A stretch of DNA of 17,497 bases from Lytechinus pictus (taxonomy: Eukaryota): assembly GCF_037042905.1 (NCBI RefSeq). It is one part of the record NC_087257.1 of this genome. The stretch is one strand, 5' to 3'. This document shows positions 1,751 to 8,809 of the stretch, piece after piece; the stretch's first letter is position 1, and every line of letters begins with the position of its first letter. A program made the position numbers and the translations under genes. The notes beneath the pieces are model-generated. The model searched no databases. It saw only the letters and a program-made list of their open reading frames with translations, and had not been told where the DNA came from.

Positions 1751-1798
1751 GGGCAGTTGTATCACGCACATATCCACCTTGATAGGTGCTCCCATATA

Positions 1799-3459
1799 CA
1801 CTGTTGGTCATAAAGGTGGAATATTTTTTTTCACCAAATTTTCTCAGCGTAATTATTGCAACATGATTTGAATATGGCATTTATGGTTGCATGATAACCA
1901 CTTTACTTTATAATTCTGCCTTTTACACACGTTTGACAGTGATATTTTACAAGTTTATGTCCTAAGCGATGGATGTCATGAGCATAGAACAACACTGACG
2001 ACAATATACAGTAAATTAAAGGATCATGAGATATTTATTTTCAATCTCTCTCAGTTTTCCAGATGACTTTTTTTGTGATTTCATGGACAAATTTGCATCA
2101 AACTTGAGTCATTGTTCTTACTCAGTCACTAGTATCGGGTATGTCCACCCCTGGCACGAACCAGCGCATGCAGACGTCGTTACATGCTGTCCACTAGCTT
2201 GTTGATGACGTAAACAGGCATAGCGTCCCATTCTTCCCTCAGAGCATTTGCCAACTCCTGCAGATTTTGAGGAATGACCTCTCTGTCGTTGATGGCTCGG
2301 CCTAGGGCATCCCATGCATGCTCTATGGGGTTCATATCCGGCGAACAAGCTGGCCATGGCAACTGTACGACGCCCTCTGCCTCCAGGAATTCCTTTACTG
2401 CAGCGGCCCTTTGCGGTCTAGCGTTGTCATCCTGCAGTCGGAAACTGTGCCCATACACTCGTCTTGCATATGGAAGACAGTGGAACTCCGAGATATCCCT
2501 GTAGGCGGCGGCGTTGACGTTTCCGTCCGGAACCACCATTGGCGTTTTCCCTCCATAATGGATGCCGGCCCATATCACCACTGAGCCGCCTCCGACTTGA
2601 GTCGTCTCGTGGATACATTCATCACAAAGGTTTTCCCCGGCTAATCGACGAACTCGTTGTCTCCCATCCTTTCGGTCAAGGATGAACCGGCTCTCGTCCG
2701 TGAAGACCACATGTTGCCAATGTCCTGGATGAAGCCTTCTGTGCTCCCTAGCCCAAAGAAGACGAGCTACTCTGAGGTGAACAGACAGGCGTGGACATTT
2801 GGTCAACCGTCGTGCTCGGTAACCATGTTGGAGCAATCTGCGATTAACGGTTGACCGGGAAACGTTGATCCCATGATATCTCCTCCACAAGCGACGGAGA
2901 TGGCTCGTGGGCAATTTCCGGTTTCTGCGGCTGAAATTCAACAGTTGGCGATCATCTCTTCTTGTGGTCAATCTGGGACGTCCTGGAGATTTCCGTGGCC
3001 GCACATTCCCCGCCTCACGTTGACGTTTCAGGATCTTAGAGACTGCACTCTGTGATATCCCTAGGACTTCTGCGGTATCAGTCTGCTTGTAGCCCTCCTG
3101 TCGCAGTGCTACCACTCTCTCGCGTGTTGCTGTTGCCGTTGGACCAGGCATAGTCCAGGGAACGTCTCTACCGATTTTTATTTCAAACGGTACAAGGAAC
3201 TCGAAAAAATGCAACCTTCTTATACACAGTGCTAAATCAGGGAAAGGGACAGAATATCATATGCATAGGCTTTTATAGTCTACAACAAAATAATTTATTA
3301 CGTAATCCAAATTTCTCATGTTATAATGTCACCTGTGTAATGGGGAAACATTATGTAATCACTCAATTACCATTTTGTCTACGCGTAGCCTTTCAAATAC
3401 CAACAAAACTGTCGATTTTTATTCAAAAATATTTTATTCCACCTTTATGACCAACAGTG
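1799..3459 (-). mobile_element. full-length Tc1-family DNA transposon (1661 bp)
   Basis: Perfect 25-bp TIRs CACTGTTGGTCATAAAGGTGGAATA (1799-1823; 3435-3459), TA TSD (1797-1798; 3460-3461), internal transposase, minus-strand AATAAA at 2034-2039. Confidence 0.97.
2129..3151 (-). pseudogene. Tc1 DD34E transposase (340 codons) with premature TAA at 2180-2182
   Basis: True ATG at 3151 (MPGPT...). Paired-like HTH, GRPR motif, FTDES...QDDNARPQ...SPDMNPIEHAW with 34 residues between the second D and E. After the TAA the frame continues RRLHALVRARGGHTRY* (TAG 2129-2131), a typical Tc1 C-terminus. Confidence 0.93.
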
Positions 3460-4350
3460 TATAAAACTGATAACACTAAAAGAATTGGCCTATAAATAAT
3501 TGGTGATAATAGTAATGATGATAACAATAATTGTAGTCCTATATTTACGCTAAGTATACAGTCAAATACAAATCATTATCCATGATTGGTTGTTATATTG
3601 TTCATATACTTGACCATATAGACTTACATTTACCTTCAACTGTAGAACTGGTTATATTTTTAATATTACAGGTCCATGGAACAATTTATGTAACCAAACC
3701 GTGGACCAGCTTTTAAAACTGTAATGATTTCAAAAATCAGCCAAGAAGAAAAAGGAGGAACAAATAACTGGAACATAATCCAAACTTTAATTTACCCCCG
3801 GGAATTTACCACGGTTTGGACAAAAACACATTTGGCACTAAAAATGAACTGAAGGGATAATGATTTCATCCGAATATGAACATATGTTATTTTATCTGCA
3901 ATAAACAAACGAATTATGGATCAATAATAAACAGTACTATATGTAGGCCTACTATCTTATAGACAATGAATTCATTCACATGCGTGCCGACTAGAGCTGT
4001 GCAAATCGTTAGTGTGCATTTGTTATAGCTCTGGTATTCTTGTTATAACCTTGATAAGAATTATAATTATTGATTCAGATTTACATTTTGCATTATAGAT
4101 CAATGCTCGGTGAGTGTAGGCCATTCATGAAGGGGATACCACCTTTTAACTAGTTCACAGTCCTTGTTTGCAGCCATTATTTCAGTAGAGTCCTCGTCAT
4201 TAAAACTAATCTGGGTTACGAACGATCGACCAAACGAGGATTCACTCATTATACGCGGCGGGTTTCGCGGTCAATTTCTTGAGAGCCATTTCGGGATTCT
4301 GGACCAACTGCAAGGCATAACGAATCCCAGCTAACTGGTCAGGCCAGACC

Positions 4351-4602
4351 ATGAACCGGTTGGCAAGTCTCCTGGGCATCATTGTGACCGTCTTCGTACT
4401 CGTACCGGTACAAGGCCACATATCATTCCAGTACTGCAGGCCGAAGTGCCCAGAGTGTCCACAGGCGGGTCTTATCCCCTTGGAGGATTGGCAACTGAGA
4501 GAGATCCAGAATGCCCAGAAGAGGGTCGCCGCTCTCAAGACCAACCGCAGCATGACTTATAGCAACACCAGGCCCATTGTTTCAGGCTTTACAACCAGTC
4601 AG
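4351..4602 (+). CDS. exon 1 of secreted Spaetzle/neurotrophin-like cystine-knot precursor (signal peptide + prodomain, 84 aa)
   Basis: accATG with in-frame TAA upstream at 4318; hydrophobic signal peptide MNRLASLLGIIVTVFVLVPVQG|H; CxxxCxxC; NRS sequon; phase-0 donor CAG|GTAGGG. Confidence 0.85.
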
Positions 4603-4919
4603 GTAGGGAGTGCAATGATGCCCTTTCATAAATGCAGTCATCTGTACCGCGGTATTATTTGCCGGTTACCATACGGGTATCAGGATCTATGAATATTAAC
4701 CTACCCTTTTTCCCAAACTGCTATAAAATTATCAAGGGCTCGATCTGCACGTTCAATATAAGATATTAAGAAAACGTTGCCATGCCTCTGTCCACCGCTT
4801 GCCAACGAAGTTGTTTCACCCACATTTTACTTCGAAATATCCACTTTTATACACTAAAATGCTTCTAGGTTACCCTTATATGCAGGGGCGGAAATCTCTC
4901 CCAAAAGTTAGGGGGGACA

Positions 4920-7101
4920 CAGGGGCGGATCCAGCCTTCGCCAATAGGGGGGGGGCGGAAATTAGTTTCAGCCATATTTTCCCCGATCGGCAGCTCGAAG
5001 ATAATTTGTGTTTGTTTCTTTGAAGGAATAGTCCTCATTAGTCACTTCCTAGCTTCATTCTTATAAATTCATATATAATATAATAATCCTTATTTATATG
5101 ATGCGAGCGCGAAGCGCGAGCTAATTTTTTGGATTTTTTTCCCCCCTAAAATTTTAACATTCTGGGCAATGTTTGTTATCCTAAAAAAATGTGTATGCAA
5201 CTTAATAATTACTACAAACGCAAAGCGCGAGCAGAAATGAACTGATGGAAAAGATACCTGTTAAAGACTACGTGCAGTTAGCGTTTAACAATCAAATATT
5301 GCGAGCGCGAAGCGCGAGCTGATTTTTTTTGACATTTTCACCTAAAGAATGGAAATTCTAAGCACTTTTTGTAACTCAAGCAGAATAGGTATATAAGTAG
5401 ACAGTTGATGCGAGCGCAAAGCGCGGGCGGAAAATTTCGAGATTTAGTCCTATAATATTTACTGAACGAGACACTCTATTCATGTTTTGTAAATCATGAA
5501 AAGGATGAGTATTAATAATGCGAGCGCAAAGCGCGAGCAGAAAATTTTTATATACGTTTTGAACAGGTACCTGTTAATGACTGCTTGAACTTAGCCATGA
5601 AGGCGTTACATATTTCAACAATTAAAAAAATGCGAGCGCGAGCTGAAAAATTTAGAAAATTTCTAAAGAAAGAATGAAAAATTTTAATCAATTTTTGTAA
5701 TCGTGAACTGGATAGCTATATAATTCAACAATTGATGCGAGCGCGAAGCGCGAGCAGAAAAAAAATATCGAGATTTAGACCTAAAAATGGGCCACTCTGT
5801 TCATGTTTTGTAAACAGCCATAGGCTGATCGAGGGCTTTTTACCGTGTTTAAATAAAATAAATCAATCAAAATCAATGTTTTGTAAATCATGAAAAGGAT
5901 GAGTAATAGGGGGTCTTCCTACATTAATAATGCGAGCACAAAGCGCGAGCAGAAAAATTTTGATATTGTGATCTGAAACTGGATACTGATTTAAATAGAG
6001 AACAAGTTGAGTATTTGAATAAACATGCGCGCGCGTGTTTCATATTTAGACCTAGAATCTAGGCATTCTAAATACATCTTAAATCATGAAAATCATGAAA
6101 CTTTGATATTCCGATCTGAAAAATAAGTCAATTAAAGCTTTATATTTCAAGCACTTTGTAGGAAAATTGTAAGGTGGATATGGATCGCACTTAAAAAAAA
6201 GAGCTAAAATTTTCATTATTATTATATTTGAGTTTTGACATAGGACCGGGACATCCTTACGACATGTCATGAAAATGATGACTATCTTCCTATTCCTCTT
6301 GCTAAGTGCGAGATGAAACAAAAGGGACAATTTAATTATTAGATTAATATCATATTTATTAATGCTTGCAGGGCGCGAAATCTGATGATATTATGGCATA
6401 AAAACTGGACATTTCACTATTGTAATTATGAATAGAATGAATCAGTTAATGTATTTTTAACCATTAATGCGAGCGCAAATCGCGAGCTAAAATTTTTGAT
6501 AACTGTCATGAAAAGGGAATTTTAAGTAGTTTGTTGTATAATCAATATTGAAACATACATAACTTGCCAATCAAAATGCCAGCGTGCAGCGCTAGCTGAT
6601 ACGTCTTGACAATCAGACCCGAAAAGGGAAATTTTGAAAACTTTATGAAATACACGAAAATAATAGGTACCTGATAAATAAAAATGTGTGAGCACGCAGC
6701 GCAAGCAGCAAATGTTGATATAATTATTCAGACCATAAAACTGACATTTTTACAGAACACTTTTTAAAAATCAATTCGTAGATCACACAAAATAATGAAA
6801 GTTCGATTTCCGAGGTGAAATATGTTTTGTATATTGACTTCCAAACTTGATATCTGAGCTCCATAGATATGTAAATCACCTAACAGGCAATGCGAGCGTA
6901 AATTTTATATAGTGGCACGAAAGATTATTTTTATTTTCCAAGTCTTCCCCTCATCTTATTTTATGCACTCGTCGTCCTTCTCTTCTTTTTCTCCTTTCTT
7001 TTCCCTCCTTTTTTCCTTTTTCATTCTTTCTTTCCCTATTTTTCTTTTTTTTGTTCCGCCAATAGGGGGGGGGGGGCTCGGCTCCCCTGGATCCGCCTAT
7101 G
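4920..7101 (+). mobile_element. non-autonomous TIR element with internal ~110-bp tandem array of TGCGAGCGCGAAGCGCGAGC units (copy 1)
   Basis: TIR CAGGGGCGGATCCAG / reverse complement CATAGGCGGATCCAG; GGGACA on both flanks; motif starts at about 5102, 5213, 5300, 5409, 5519, 5631, 5736, 5931, with decayed copies to about 6900. Confidence 0.8.
5815..5875 (+). mobile_element. severely 5'-truncated non-LTR retroposon 3' end
   Basis: 61-bp insert ending AATAAAATAAATCAATCAAAATCA, flanked by a perfect 12-bp duplication ATGTTTTGTAAA (5803-5814; 5876-5887). The sister repeat unit near 5482 lacks it. Confidence 0.75.
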
Positions 7102-7500
7102 GGGACAAGGGGCGGGAAAATTTGACAAGCAAAAAAAAAGGTTATCATCCCAAAAGTACGGTCCCAACTCTCGTCACGTCCCAAGTCTCGTCCCAACTCG
7201 TCCCAAAATACATGTTTTATTACGATTTAGAATGATATATTTCTTACCATGAAAGACAAAAAATAGTAGGGGGGACATTTGATATTGTGTCCCCCCTATT
7301 ATTTTGAGTAGGGGGGACACGTCCCCCCTGTCCCCCCTGGGATTTCCGCCCATGCTAACATGCATGAATTAAACTCACCCGTTATGCTTTTACGAGGTTA
7401 AAAAAAAATTCTGGAGTGCGAAAATACAGATTTGCAGATAATACTTATATTTTTTATGTTATATTTATATGTAATTTTATCTTTGATTATTTTCTAACAG

Positions 7501-7716
7501 AAGGAACAAATGAGGGAATTATTCGGCCAATACTTCAGCAGAGACAAAACATCAGTTGACGAAGACTTCATGTTGTTTGACGAAACTAACCCAAGTAGTC
7601 GACGGCGAAAGCGCGACCCCGATGATCACCTGACTCGGGTCTGTCCGGTTATCCGAACTCCGAATGTTCTTGTGACAGTCTATGATGCGGATGGCAACGT
7701 CTTACAAGTGATTCAG
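7501..7716 (+). CDS. exon 2 of Spaetzle/neurotrophin-like precursor (72 aa, contains furin site)
   Basis: Acceptor ttttctaacAG at 7500 and donor CAG|GTGAGC; phase 0/0; open frame KEQMRELFG...RRRKR|DPDDHLTRVCP...LQVIQ. Confidence 0.88.
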
Positions 7717-8262
7717 GTGAGCTTTCAGATTTCAGTTTTCCATACAATAATGCAAATTGAAAGGAAACAATATGTAAATATCATAGTTGATATAGTTTGA
7801 AGTTTATGTAGAATATCTTCCTAAAACATTTCAATAAATTAAATAACAGTGTACTAAAAAATGTTTAGGCATAGCCATATAACAGTTAATAAAGCCTTTT
7901 CTCTGTATTTGTTTTTCATCATAAGCATAGTTTGGTAGTAGGGTCGTCGATCAATGTTTTAGATGGGGGGGGGGGGTGAAAAAGAAAAATTCCGTAATTG
8001 TCAGTGCGCTCTGCGCACGAAATTATCATAGGCCCTACCGAACTTTGCGCCGTCAAGTTAACACTTGCGTTTATGTCATGTTAAATTATTGCATATAAAT
8101 TTCCACTGCATTTTGAGACATATATTTGCATATATAGGCCTATTCGTGTCAGTTTTGGTAATGCTATACCGTCAGACAAGACATGATTACTCGATGATTA
8201 GAAGACCATTTTTTTAGTCTCCGTTAAAAGAAAAACATGTTATTTTTCTTGATGTATCTCAG

Positions 8263-8463
8263 GCCAATGGTCATACACAACCGATGTTCCGTGAGATTTG
8301 TGCAAGCCCTCTCTCACCGCATACAATCGATGCTTCATGTATGTCGGCTGTACGGTTTGCTTACATGGTGGGCTTCCACGTTGACTTGAACAACCAACCA
8401 ACGCATATCCAAGCTTATCGTATTCAGATCGAGTCCTGTACCTCGGTCATGTCAACGGGATGA
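8263..8463 (+). CDS. exon 3 (terminal) of Spaetzle/neurotrophin-like precursor (66 aa + stop)
   Basis: Acceptor ...gtatctcAG at 8262; phase 0 gives ANGHTQPMFREICASPLSPHTIDASCMSAVRFAYMVGFHVDLNNQPTHIQAYRIQIESCTSVMSTG*; TGA at 8461-8463; AATAAA shortly downstream. Confidence 0.88.
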   Translation, partial: ANGHTQPMFREICASPLSPHTIDASCMSAVRFAYMVGFHVDLNNQPTHIQAYRIQIESCTSVMSTG

Positions 8464-8504
8464 CCAAGGTTTACATAAGAAATATGGACCAGACACAAAA
8501 TATG

Positions 8505-8534
8505 AATAAAGTCCGACAGGCAGTGAAAAATAAA
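8505..8534 (+). terminator. two polyadenylation signals (AATAAA 8505-8510 and 8529-8534)
   Basis: Canonical hexamers just after the stop codon, followed by T-rich sequence. Confidence 0.6.
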
Positions 8535-8544
8535 CAATTAACAT

Positions 8545-8621
8545 ATTTATTTATTTATCAATTACTTAATTAATTAATTTATTTATCTATTTATTTAATT
8601 ATTTATTCATTTATTTATTTA
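8545..8621 (+). repeat. (ATTT)n degenerate microsatellite / ATTTA cluster
   Basis: Many overlapping ATTTA pentamers. Confidence 0.85.
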
Positions 8622-8680
8622 TCAAGACCTACATTATTTCGCTAGGATCAGGATCACTTTCATCCTGGTCTTGATATTGC

Positions 8681-8809
8681 NNNNNNNNNNNNNNNNNNNN
8701 NNNNNNNNNNNNNNNNNNNNNNNNNNNNNNNNNNNNNNNNNNNNNNNNNNNNNNNNNNNNNNNNNNNNNNNNNNNNNNNNNNNNNNNNNNNNNNNNNNNN
8801 NNNNNNNNN
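8681..8809. other. assembly gap (129 N)
   Basis: Run of N. Confidence 1.

Follow-up and report, generated by a model that had tools for sequence, protein, structure and literature searches.

LOC135156453 of the sea urchin Lytechinus pictus, a fast-evolving gene for a putative secreted ligand with possible Spaetzle/neurotrophin affinity

The Spaetzle proteins of Drosophila and other arthropods (PF16077), which are Toll ligands, and the neurotrophins share a precursor layout in which a secreted protein carries a C-terminal domain of about 100 aa that is freed after a basic site. NGF has six cysteines, paired as 15-80, 58-108 and 68-110, and Spaetzle C-106 has seven. Ligands of the neurotrophin/Spaetzle superfamily are already known as a kind in sea urchins, which also have very large families of Toll-like receptors (TLRs). 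The sea urchin Strongylocentrotus purpuratus has two neurotrophins; Sp-NT is encoded by one coding exon, Sp-NT2 has several exons, Spz-like residues and an extra Cys beside Cys V, and both retain the six knot Cys (Wilson 2009, PMC2772990). The receptors Trk and p75NTR are present in sea urchins (PMC2772990), and Lytechinus variegatus has three Drosophila-Toll-like mccTLRs and 64 sccTLRs (PMC3367398). The subject of this analysis is the gene LOC135156453 of Lytechinus pictus. It lies in a stretch of 17,497 nucleotides of the record NC_087257.1 (assembly GCF_037042905.1), referred to here at its full length as the window, and the locus is found at around 23.99-24.01 Mb of chromosome record CM073238.1 in assembly GCA_037042905.1.

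The favoured explanation, with a probability of roughly 60%, is that LOC135156453 encodes a secreted, convertase-processed and unknotted ligand of the Spaetzle/neurotrophin superfamily that is lineage-restricted and fast-evolving. In the pathway that we infer, a 22-aa signal peptide would route the preproprotein to the secretory pathway and a proprotein convertase would cleave it after RRRKR (residue 122). The released 100-aa C-terminal domain would be a diverged beta-hairpin growth-factor ligand of this superfamily. Of the three knot disulfides, it would retain two (by position, Cys I-IV and II-V); as Cys III and VI are lacking, this would be an unknotted version of the fold. The product would most likely be a dimeric extracellular ligand of a cell-surface receptor. 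The Drosophila-Toll-like mccTLRs, Trk and p75NTR are candidate receptors only, and a link to either Toll/TLR or Trk/p75 would be purely conjectural.

LOC135156453 is annotated and unnamed. A first-pass annotation of the window had presented it as a hidden gene, but the product is letter for letter RefSeq XP_063965052.1 (uncharacterized protein LOC135156453, Lytechinus pictus), and that description is rejected since RefSeq already annotates the gene. A literature search covering the LOC identifiers, the relatives of the gene and echinoderm Spaetzle-like genes found nothing on any of them. Two word-indexed homology searches returned three Lytechinus proteins only, namely the window protein (P0003), a second L. 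pictus copy (P0001) and an L. variegatus ortholog (P0004). The second copy, LOC135156459, is 92% identical and lies 37 kb downstream on the same record in a gene of 2241 bp. The ortholog, LOC121426895, has 233 aa, is 80% identical and is syntenic. A phmmer search of 1.84 billion representative proteins with exon 3 as the query gave one true cluster, with the two L. pictus RefSeq proteins as its members. A further match in that search (P0002) was a repeat-derived false match. No S. purpuratus relative was found by phmmer with exon 3; therefore, LOC135156453 is not an evident ortholog of Sp-NT or Sp-NT2. With the phmmer and word-indexed searches used, the family appears to be confined to Lytechinus.

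Compared by description only, LOC135156453 resembles Sp-NT and Sp-NT2 in being an echinoid gene for a predicted secreted, pro-processed ligand of the neurotrophin/Spz superfamily, and Sp-NT2 is likewise multi-exon. Unlike those two, the L. pictus protein lacks Cys III and VI and has no Pfam NGF match. The features that appear to set it apart are the four-Cys framework, the lack of an NGF profile signal, the range restricted to Lytechinus in the searches and a hypervariable middle segment.

The three-exon gene model is confirmed by RNA. Sequences from two assembled runs (X1 and X2) and two raw-read runs (X9 and X10) were compared with positions 4100-8670. As the first-pass annotation had read from the sequence, three phase-0 exons join into an open reading frame (ORF) of 222 codons plus a stop, with GT..AG at both introns. 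The exons (4351-4602, 7501-7716 and 8263-8463) each have a length divisible by three, and the start ATG at 4351 is the first ATG downstream of an in-frame TAA at 4318. The features of the locus are as follows.

4195..4350, plus strand: 5' leader, transcribed, minimum extent; an X1 RNA contig is gap-free over 4195-4574 and the in-frame stop at 4318-4320 limits the ORF
4351..4602, plus strand: coding exon 1, 84 aa, with the predicted signal peptide (residues 1-22) and the start of the prodomain; the RNA joint uses the GT donor at 4603
4603..7500, plus strand: intron 1, 2898 bp; RNA joint 4602/7501
7501..7716, plus strand: coding exon 2, 72 aa, covering the remainder of the prodomain, the basic cleavage site and mature residues 1-34 (Cys I and the predicted first hairpin); X1 and X2 RNA contigs
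7600..7614, plus strand: RRRKR, a furin-type R-x-K/R-R site; read from the sequence and conserved in three genes
7717..8262, plus strand: intron 2, 546 bp, GT..AG; RNA joint 7716/8263
8263..8463, plus strand: coding exon 3, 66 aa plus stop, with Cys II, the variable loop, Cys IV, the predicted second hairpin and Cys V, and the C-terminus ESCTSVMSTG; RNA contigs 8259-8427 and 8259-8523 agree with the window version
8263..8400, plus strand: divergence hot-spot in exon 3; 86-87% identity in the copy-copy comparison against 97-100% around it
8464..8535, plus strand: 3' untranslated region, minimum extent, with AATAAA-type signals at 8505 and 8529; an X2 contig extends to 8523

Both of the splice junctions that the first-pass annotation had put forward for an RNA check are present. 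The joint 4602/7501 occurs in X1 contigs (aligned as 4599>7498, shifted by 3) and the joint 7716/8263 occurs in X1 and X2 contigs (7712>8259, shifted by 4). Together the X1 and X2 contigs cover 4195-4602, 7498-7717 and 8259-8523, and a single 465-base contig of X2 starts at 7513, crosses the second joint and reaches 8523. Exon 2 is present in RNA-labelled runs of one species. Since the X1 contig spans 4195-4574, the transcript starts at or 5' of 4195. The raw-read runs X9 and X10 had zero reads on the exons; therefore, the gene is silent or rare in those two samples. In the RNA contigs exon 3 is the window version, and exons 1 and 2 mix the letters of both L. pictus copies, which suggests that the few differences between the copies in these two exons are shared polymorphisms. 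RNA reads and contigs also pile up on repeats within intron 1 (e.g. 4865-5017 and 7007-7465), with loose ends and odd joints, which indicates that these repeats are transcribed from elsewhere in the genome. The many X9 and X10 reads that fall within this intron are likewise loose-ended and repeat-derived. An insertion of repeats of about 2.47 kb in this intron (4884-7355) is private to the window copy and absent from the tandem copy. A 103-aa antisense ORF on the minus strand (4242-4553) overlaps exon 1 and is probably due to chance.

The precursor matches the layout of Spaetzle and neurotrophin precursors, as a sequence prediction only. The signal peptide claimed in the first-pass annotation is likewise predicted; the N-terminus has one basic residue and a hydrophobic core with a Kyte-Doolittle mean of up to 3.15 across residues 7-17, and cleavage following residue 22 would place V at -3 and G at -1. 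The RRRKR motif is located exactly where it had been placed, and it contains the single match to R-x-K/R-R in the precursor (RRKR, residues 119-122). The part of the protein that follows it is 100 aa long, as had also been reported. The basic site is RRRKR in LOC135156453 and in the tandem copy, and RRRFKR in L. variegatus, in which RFKR fits the furin-type site. It is thus retained in all three genes amid local sequence change. The N-terminal part contains a CRPKCPEC motif within the prodomain portion of exon 1, a KR dipeptide at residues 57-58 and the sole N-glycosylation sequon (N-x-S) at N65.

The L. pictus mature domain contains four Cys (10, 47, 60 and 93) and lacks the six-Cys framework of the neurotrophins and Spaetzle, to which Spaetzle adds an intermolecular Cys. 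We take Cys 10, 47, 60 and 93 to be in register with knot Cys I, II, IV and V of NGF and Spaetzle C-106, with a Ser at the place of Cys VI (ESCTS). The distances from the cleavage site to Cys I and Cys II are presumably the same as in Spaetzle, and both proteins presumably end in TG. With four Cys the domain cannot be a true cystine knot; in this register Cys III and VI would be the missing ones, which would leave open the knot ring made of II-V plus III-VI. Spaetzle differs in having seven Cys, with Cys III, Cys VI and the intermolecular Cys all absent from the L. pictus protein. Spaetzle also has a clip-protease site where LOC135156453 has a furin-type site, and the host here is a deuterostome. 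The mature domain of L. variegatus has seven Cys (9, 46, 53, 56, 63, 65 and 98), of which one sits seven residues past Cys II and none is at the position of Cys VI. The odd number would allow an interchain bond.

AlphaFold2 with a three-sequence alignment reached a pLDDT of 29.8 on the full protein and of 46.0 on the mature domain, which is too poor to test the fold. In both of these low-confidence runs, mature residues 18-35 and mature residues 66-89 are each modelled as a long hairpin. Cys 10 and 47 flank the first hairpin in the models and Cys 60 and 93 are at the base of the second. Searches with the poor mature-domain model (Foldseek against AFDB Swiss-Prot and the PDB, Atlas shape and VIA wide) returned noise with no Z>=5, consisting of unrelated beta-sandwich and enzyme fragments without a significant score. 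The first hairpin, VYDADGNVLQVIQANGHT (mature residues 18-40; 7666-7716 plus 8263-8280), is YD/RHS-repeat-like, with an E-value of 0.05 to Pfam RHS_repeat. This likeness is taken as convergence on a beta-hairpin motif.

Membership of the Spaetzle/neurotrophin superfamily is suggested, weakly, by two independent signals, the ESM-Atlas features and a Pfam Spaetzle match of the ortholog. In the ESM-Atlas search the whole protein had a best score of 0.95 with 216 of 256 features shared, and its nearest clusters, from 0.95 to 0.90, include an unnamed echinoderm cluster of 65 members. All ten named matches belong to one clan (Spaetzle, NGF, IL17 and Noggin). The mature part alone reached Spaetzle and NGF clusters (0.90, 189 features); therefore, the Atlas signal does not merely reflect the layout of signal peptide and prodomain. 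Exon 3 alone was uninformative. The best Pfam family of the L. variegatus mature domain is PF16077 Spaetzle, with an E-value of 7.4e-4 and a score of 20.5 bits that falls below the curated cut-off of 27 bits; residues 22-98 align to profile positions 17-92 of 96. The protein is therefore like Spaetzle in the best Pfam family of its ortholog and in its best Atlas features, but unlike it in that the ortholog scores below the cut-off and the L. pictus copies have no match. The Spaetzle/neurotrophin reading of the first-pass annotation is thus supported in part, by the Atlas features and the sub-threshold match of the ortholog, and a profile match of the L. pictus protein itself did not follow.

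Several results weigh against the favoured explanation. The L. pictus proteins, whether used in full, as mature domains or as exon pieces, have no match to Pfam NGF, Spaetzle or IL17 at E<=10, and the profile check of the mature domain that the first-pass annotation had proposed thus came out negative. At the same threshold Pfam NGF (PF00243) has no match in the two L. pictus proteins or the L. variegatus ortholog, used whole or as mature parts. The PF16077 match occurs only in the ortholog with three extra loop Cys and may therefore be partly cysteine-driven. A similarly weak match of the L. pictus domain (E 0.004) is to NPC1_MLD, an unrelated family, so weak Pfam values should be read with caution here. 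The ESM-Atlas scores are leads and not tests. Nothing relevant was found among PDB sequences, whether the query was an exon piece, a mature domain or a three-sequence profile. No homolog outside Lytechinus was found, so the family assignment has no deep alignment behind it. The unusable structure models and the noise from the fold searches would count as neither a pass nor a fail for the cystine-knot fold. Finally, conservation is higher in the prodomain than in the domain proposed to be active. The dN/dS between L. pictus and L. variegatus, by Nei-Gojobori estimates as throughout, is 0.32-0.38 for the prodomain, compared with 0.55-0.58 for the mature part. Weak matches of the PDB searches to YD/RHS-repeat-like proteins (teneurin and Tse15), YejM and ARIH1 were taken as chance.

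Some of these results would also be expected if LOC135156453 encoded a lineage-restricted secreted protein or prohormone of unrelated or new fold, whose resemblance to Spaetzle and NGF is superficial (a small, secreted, beta-rich protein with few Cys and a basic site). The lack of a family match for the L. pictus proteins and of a homolog outside Lytechinus fits such a protein. The stronger constraint on the prodomain fits it as well, and the conserved N-terminal part (residues 23-117, with CRPKCPEC and the KR at 57-58) could then itself be the active product. The NPC1_MLD match and the YD/RHS-like hairpin show that weak matches come easily with this sequence. However, two different methods agree on one clan, as the Atlas search points to it with both the whole protein and the mature part and Pfam points to Spaetzle with the ortholog. 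In addition, each predicted hairpin would have Cys at its base, which is also their placement in the NGF/Spaetzle fold. A superficial resemblance is therefore considered unlikely, while keeping an appreciable share of the probability.

The number and order of the Cys would also fit a diverged interleukin-17 (IL-17) of invertebrate type that signals via IL-17 receptors. Invertebrate IL-17s assigned to the 'T1C' disulfide class retain the 1/4 and 2/5 disulfides, and the one that they have lost is precisely Cys 3/6 (PMC11087794). With the Cys pairing predicted here, the L. pictus protein would share with this class a cystine-knot-derived fold minus the 3/6 disulfide. IL17 clusters are among the Atlas matches, with scores of 0.91 (whole protein) and 0.86 (mature part), but the Spaetzle and NGF clusters outrank them in both searches. 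Pfam IL17 (PF06083) matches none of the three proteins at E<=10, whereas Pfam Spaetzle matches one. LOC135156453 has a long prodomain that ends in a furin-type site, a layout characteristic of precursors of the NGF/Spaetzle type but not of IL-17s. An IL-17 identity is therefore rather improbable.

The selection on the gene is purifying but relaxed, and the pattern of constraint is that of a functional, fast-evolving gene. Between L. pictus and L. variegatus the dS is 0.21 and the overall dN/dS is 0.56; between the two L. pictus copies the synonymous divergence is 0.06 and the dN/dS is 0.66. The ORFs are intact in all three genes, and the first hairpin region and the C-terminal 22 residues are nearly invariant among them. 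The high dN/dS between the copies, the loss of Cys relative to L. variegatus and the narrow taxonomic range could point to a decaying or functionless young duplicate that is transcribed and has no role as a ligand. Such a duplicate would not be expected to leave three intact ORFs with conserved splice sites and cleavage site, a dN/dS below 1 in the species comparison, spliced RNA, and an almost invariant first hairpin and C-terminus. This explanation is very improbable.

The divergence between the L. pictus copies is concentrated in exon 3. Identity between the copies is about 98% in the 5' flank, in the introns and in exons 1 and 2 (98.4% for exon 1), but falls to 89.6% in exon 3. The drop is limited to about 8200-8400, from the last part of intron 2 through the first two thirds of exon 3. 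In bins of 100 bases the identity is 86-87% in the hot-spot, 97-100% for 7600 to 8099 and 99% at 8400-8499; bins that overlap 8681-8809, where the window is masked as N, were excluded. Codons 158-198 contain ten amino-acid changes, and in five of these two or three bases of the codon differ; four further codons in the hot-spot differ only synonymously. In exon 3 the L. pictus copies differ at 21 sites and either copy differs from L. variegatus at 26-30 sites; in exons 1 and 2 the corresponding numbers are 8 and about 53. In L. variegatus the hot-spot segment has a six-residue indel with three extra Cys. Since synonymous and intronic sites have changed in addition to non-synonymous ones, an old haplotype or conversion tract, possibly kept by selection, is a more likely cause of the hot-spot than recent positive selection alone. 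As a guess, the segment between the hairpins contributes to specificity.

The three-exon structure is common to both L. pictus copies and the L. variegatus ortholog, and the flanks of all three genes are alike, with a Fibrinogen_C-domain gene upstream and a Patatin/EF-hand gene downstream. The block consisting of the Fibrinogen_C gene, the ligand-like gene and the Patatin gene occurs twice, 37 kb apart, on CM073238.1. Across the whole window the L. pictus loci align collinearly with 92-99% DNA identity, except for insertions private to the window. The two blocks may be either a true tandem segmental duplication or retained haplotypes.

Other features were observed in the window. A Tc1/mariner-type insertion of 1.66 kb (1798-3460) contains an ORF on the minus strand (2180-3214) for an intact 344-aa transposase of this type, with Pfam HTH_Tnp_Tc3_2 and DDE_3 domains. 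Since the insertion is absent from the tandem copy's locus, it is likely to be recent and possibly active. The start of the Patatin/EF-hand phospholipase-like gene is located at 13903-17497 on the plus strand; the gene is called with 670 aa here and with 792 aa beside the tandem copy. Its first coding exon (about 13903-14380) contains a GGGxKG motif, and this exon alone has no Pfam match. A repeat of about 610 bp (16872-17481) matches in both orientations at several places in the L. variegatus locus and both L. pictus loci, and looks like a dispersed or foldback element.

To our knowledge, few or no endogenous ligands of sea urchin TLRs, Trk or p75NTR have been shown experimentally. A Spaetzle/neurotrophin-related, furin-processed ligand, if the favoured explanation is true, would be a concrete candidate for tests in L. 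pictus, a sea urchin of laboratory genetics. It would also be a natural case of the fold working with two knot disulfides and not three, as reported for some invertebrate IL-17s. The local hyper-divergence of the inter-hairpin segment may reflect selection acting on a recognition surface. A further step, and a long shot, is that the gene encodes an endogenous deuterostome Spaetzle-type cytokine that activates a Drosophila-Toll-like mccTLR or some of the sea urchin TLRs, with the hypervariable segment between the hairpins, distinct between copies or alleles, tuning its specificity. If a Toll-activating Spaetzle-type cytokine of this sort is real, it would provide the first ligand-receptor pair of the Spz-Toll kind outside the protostomes.

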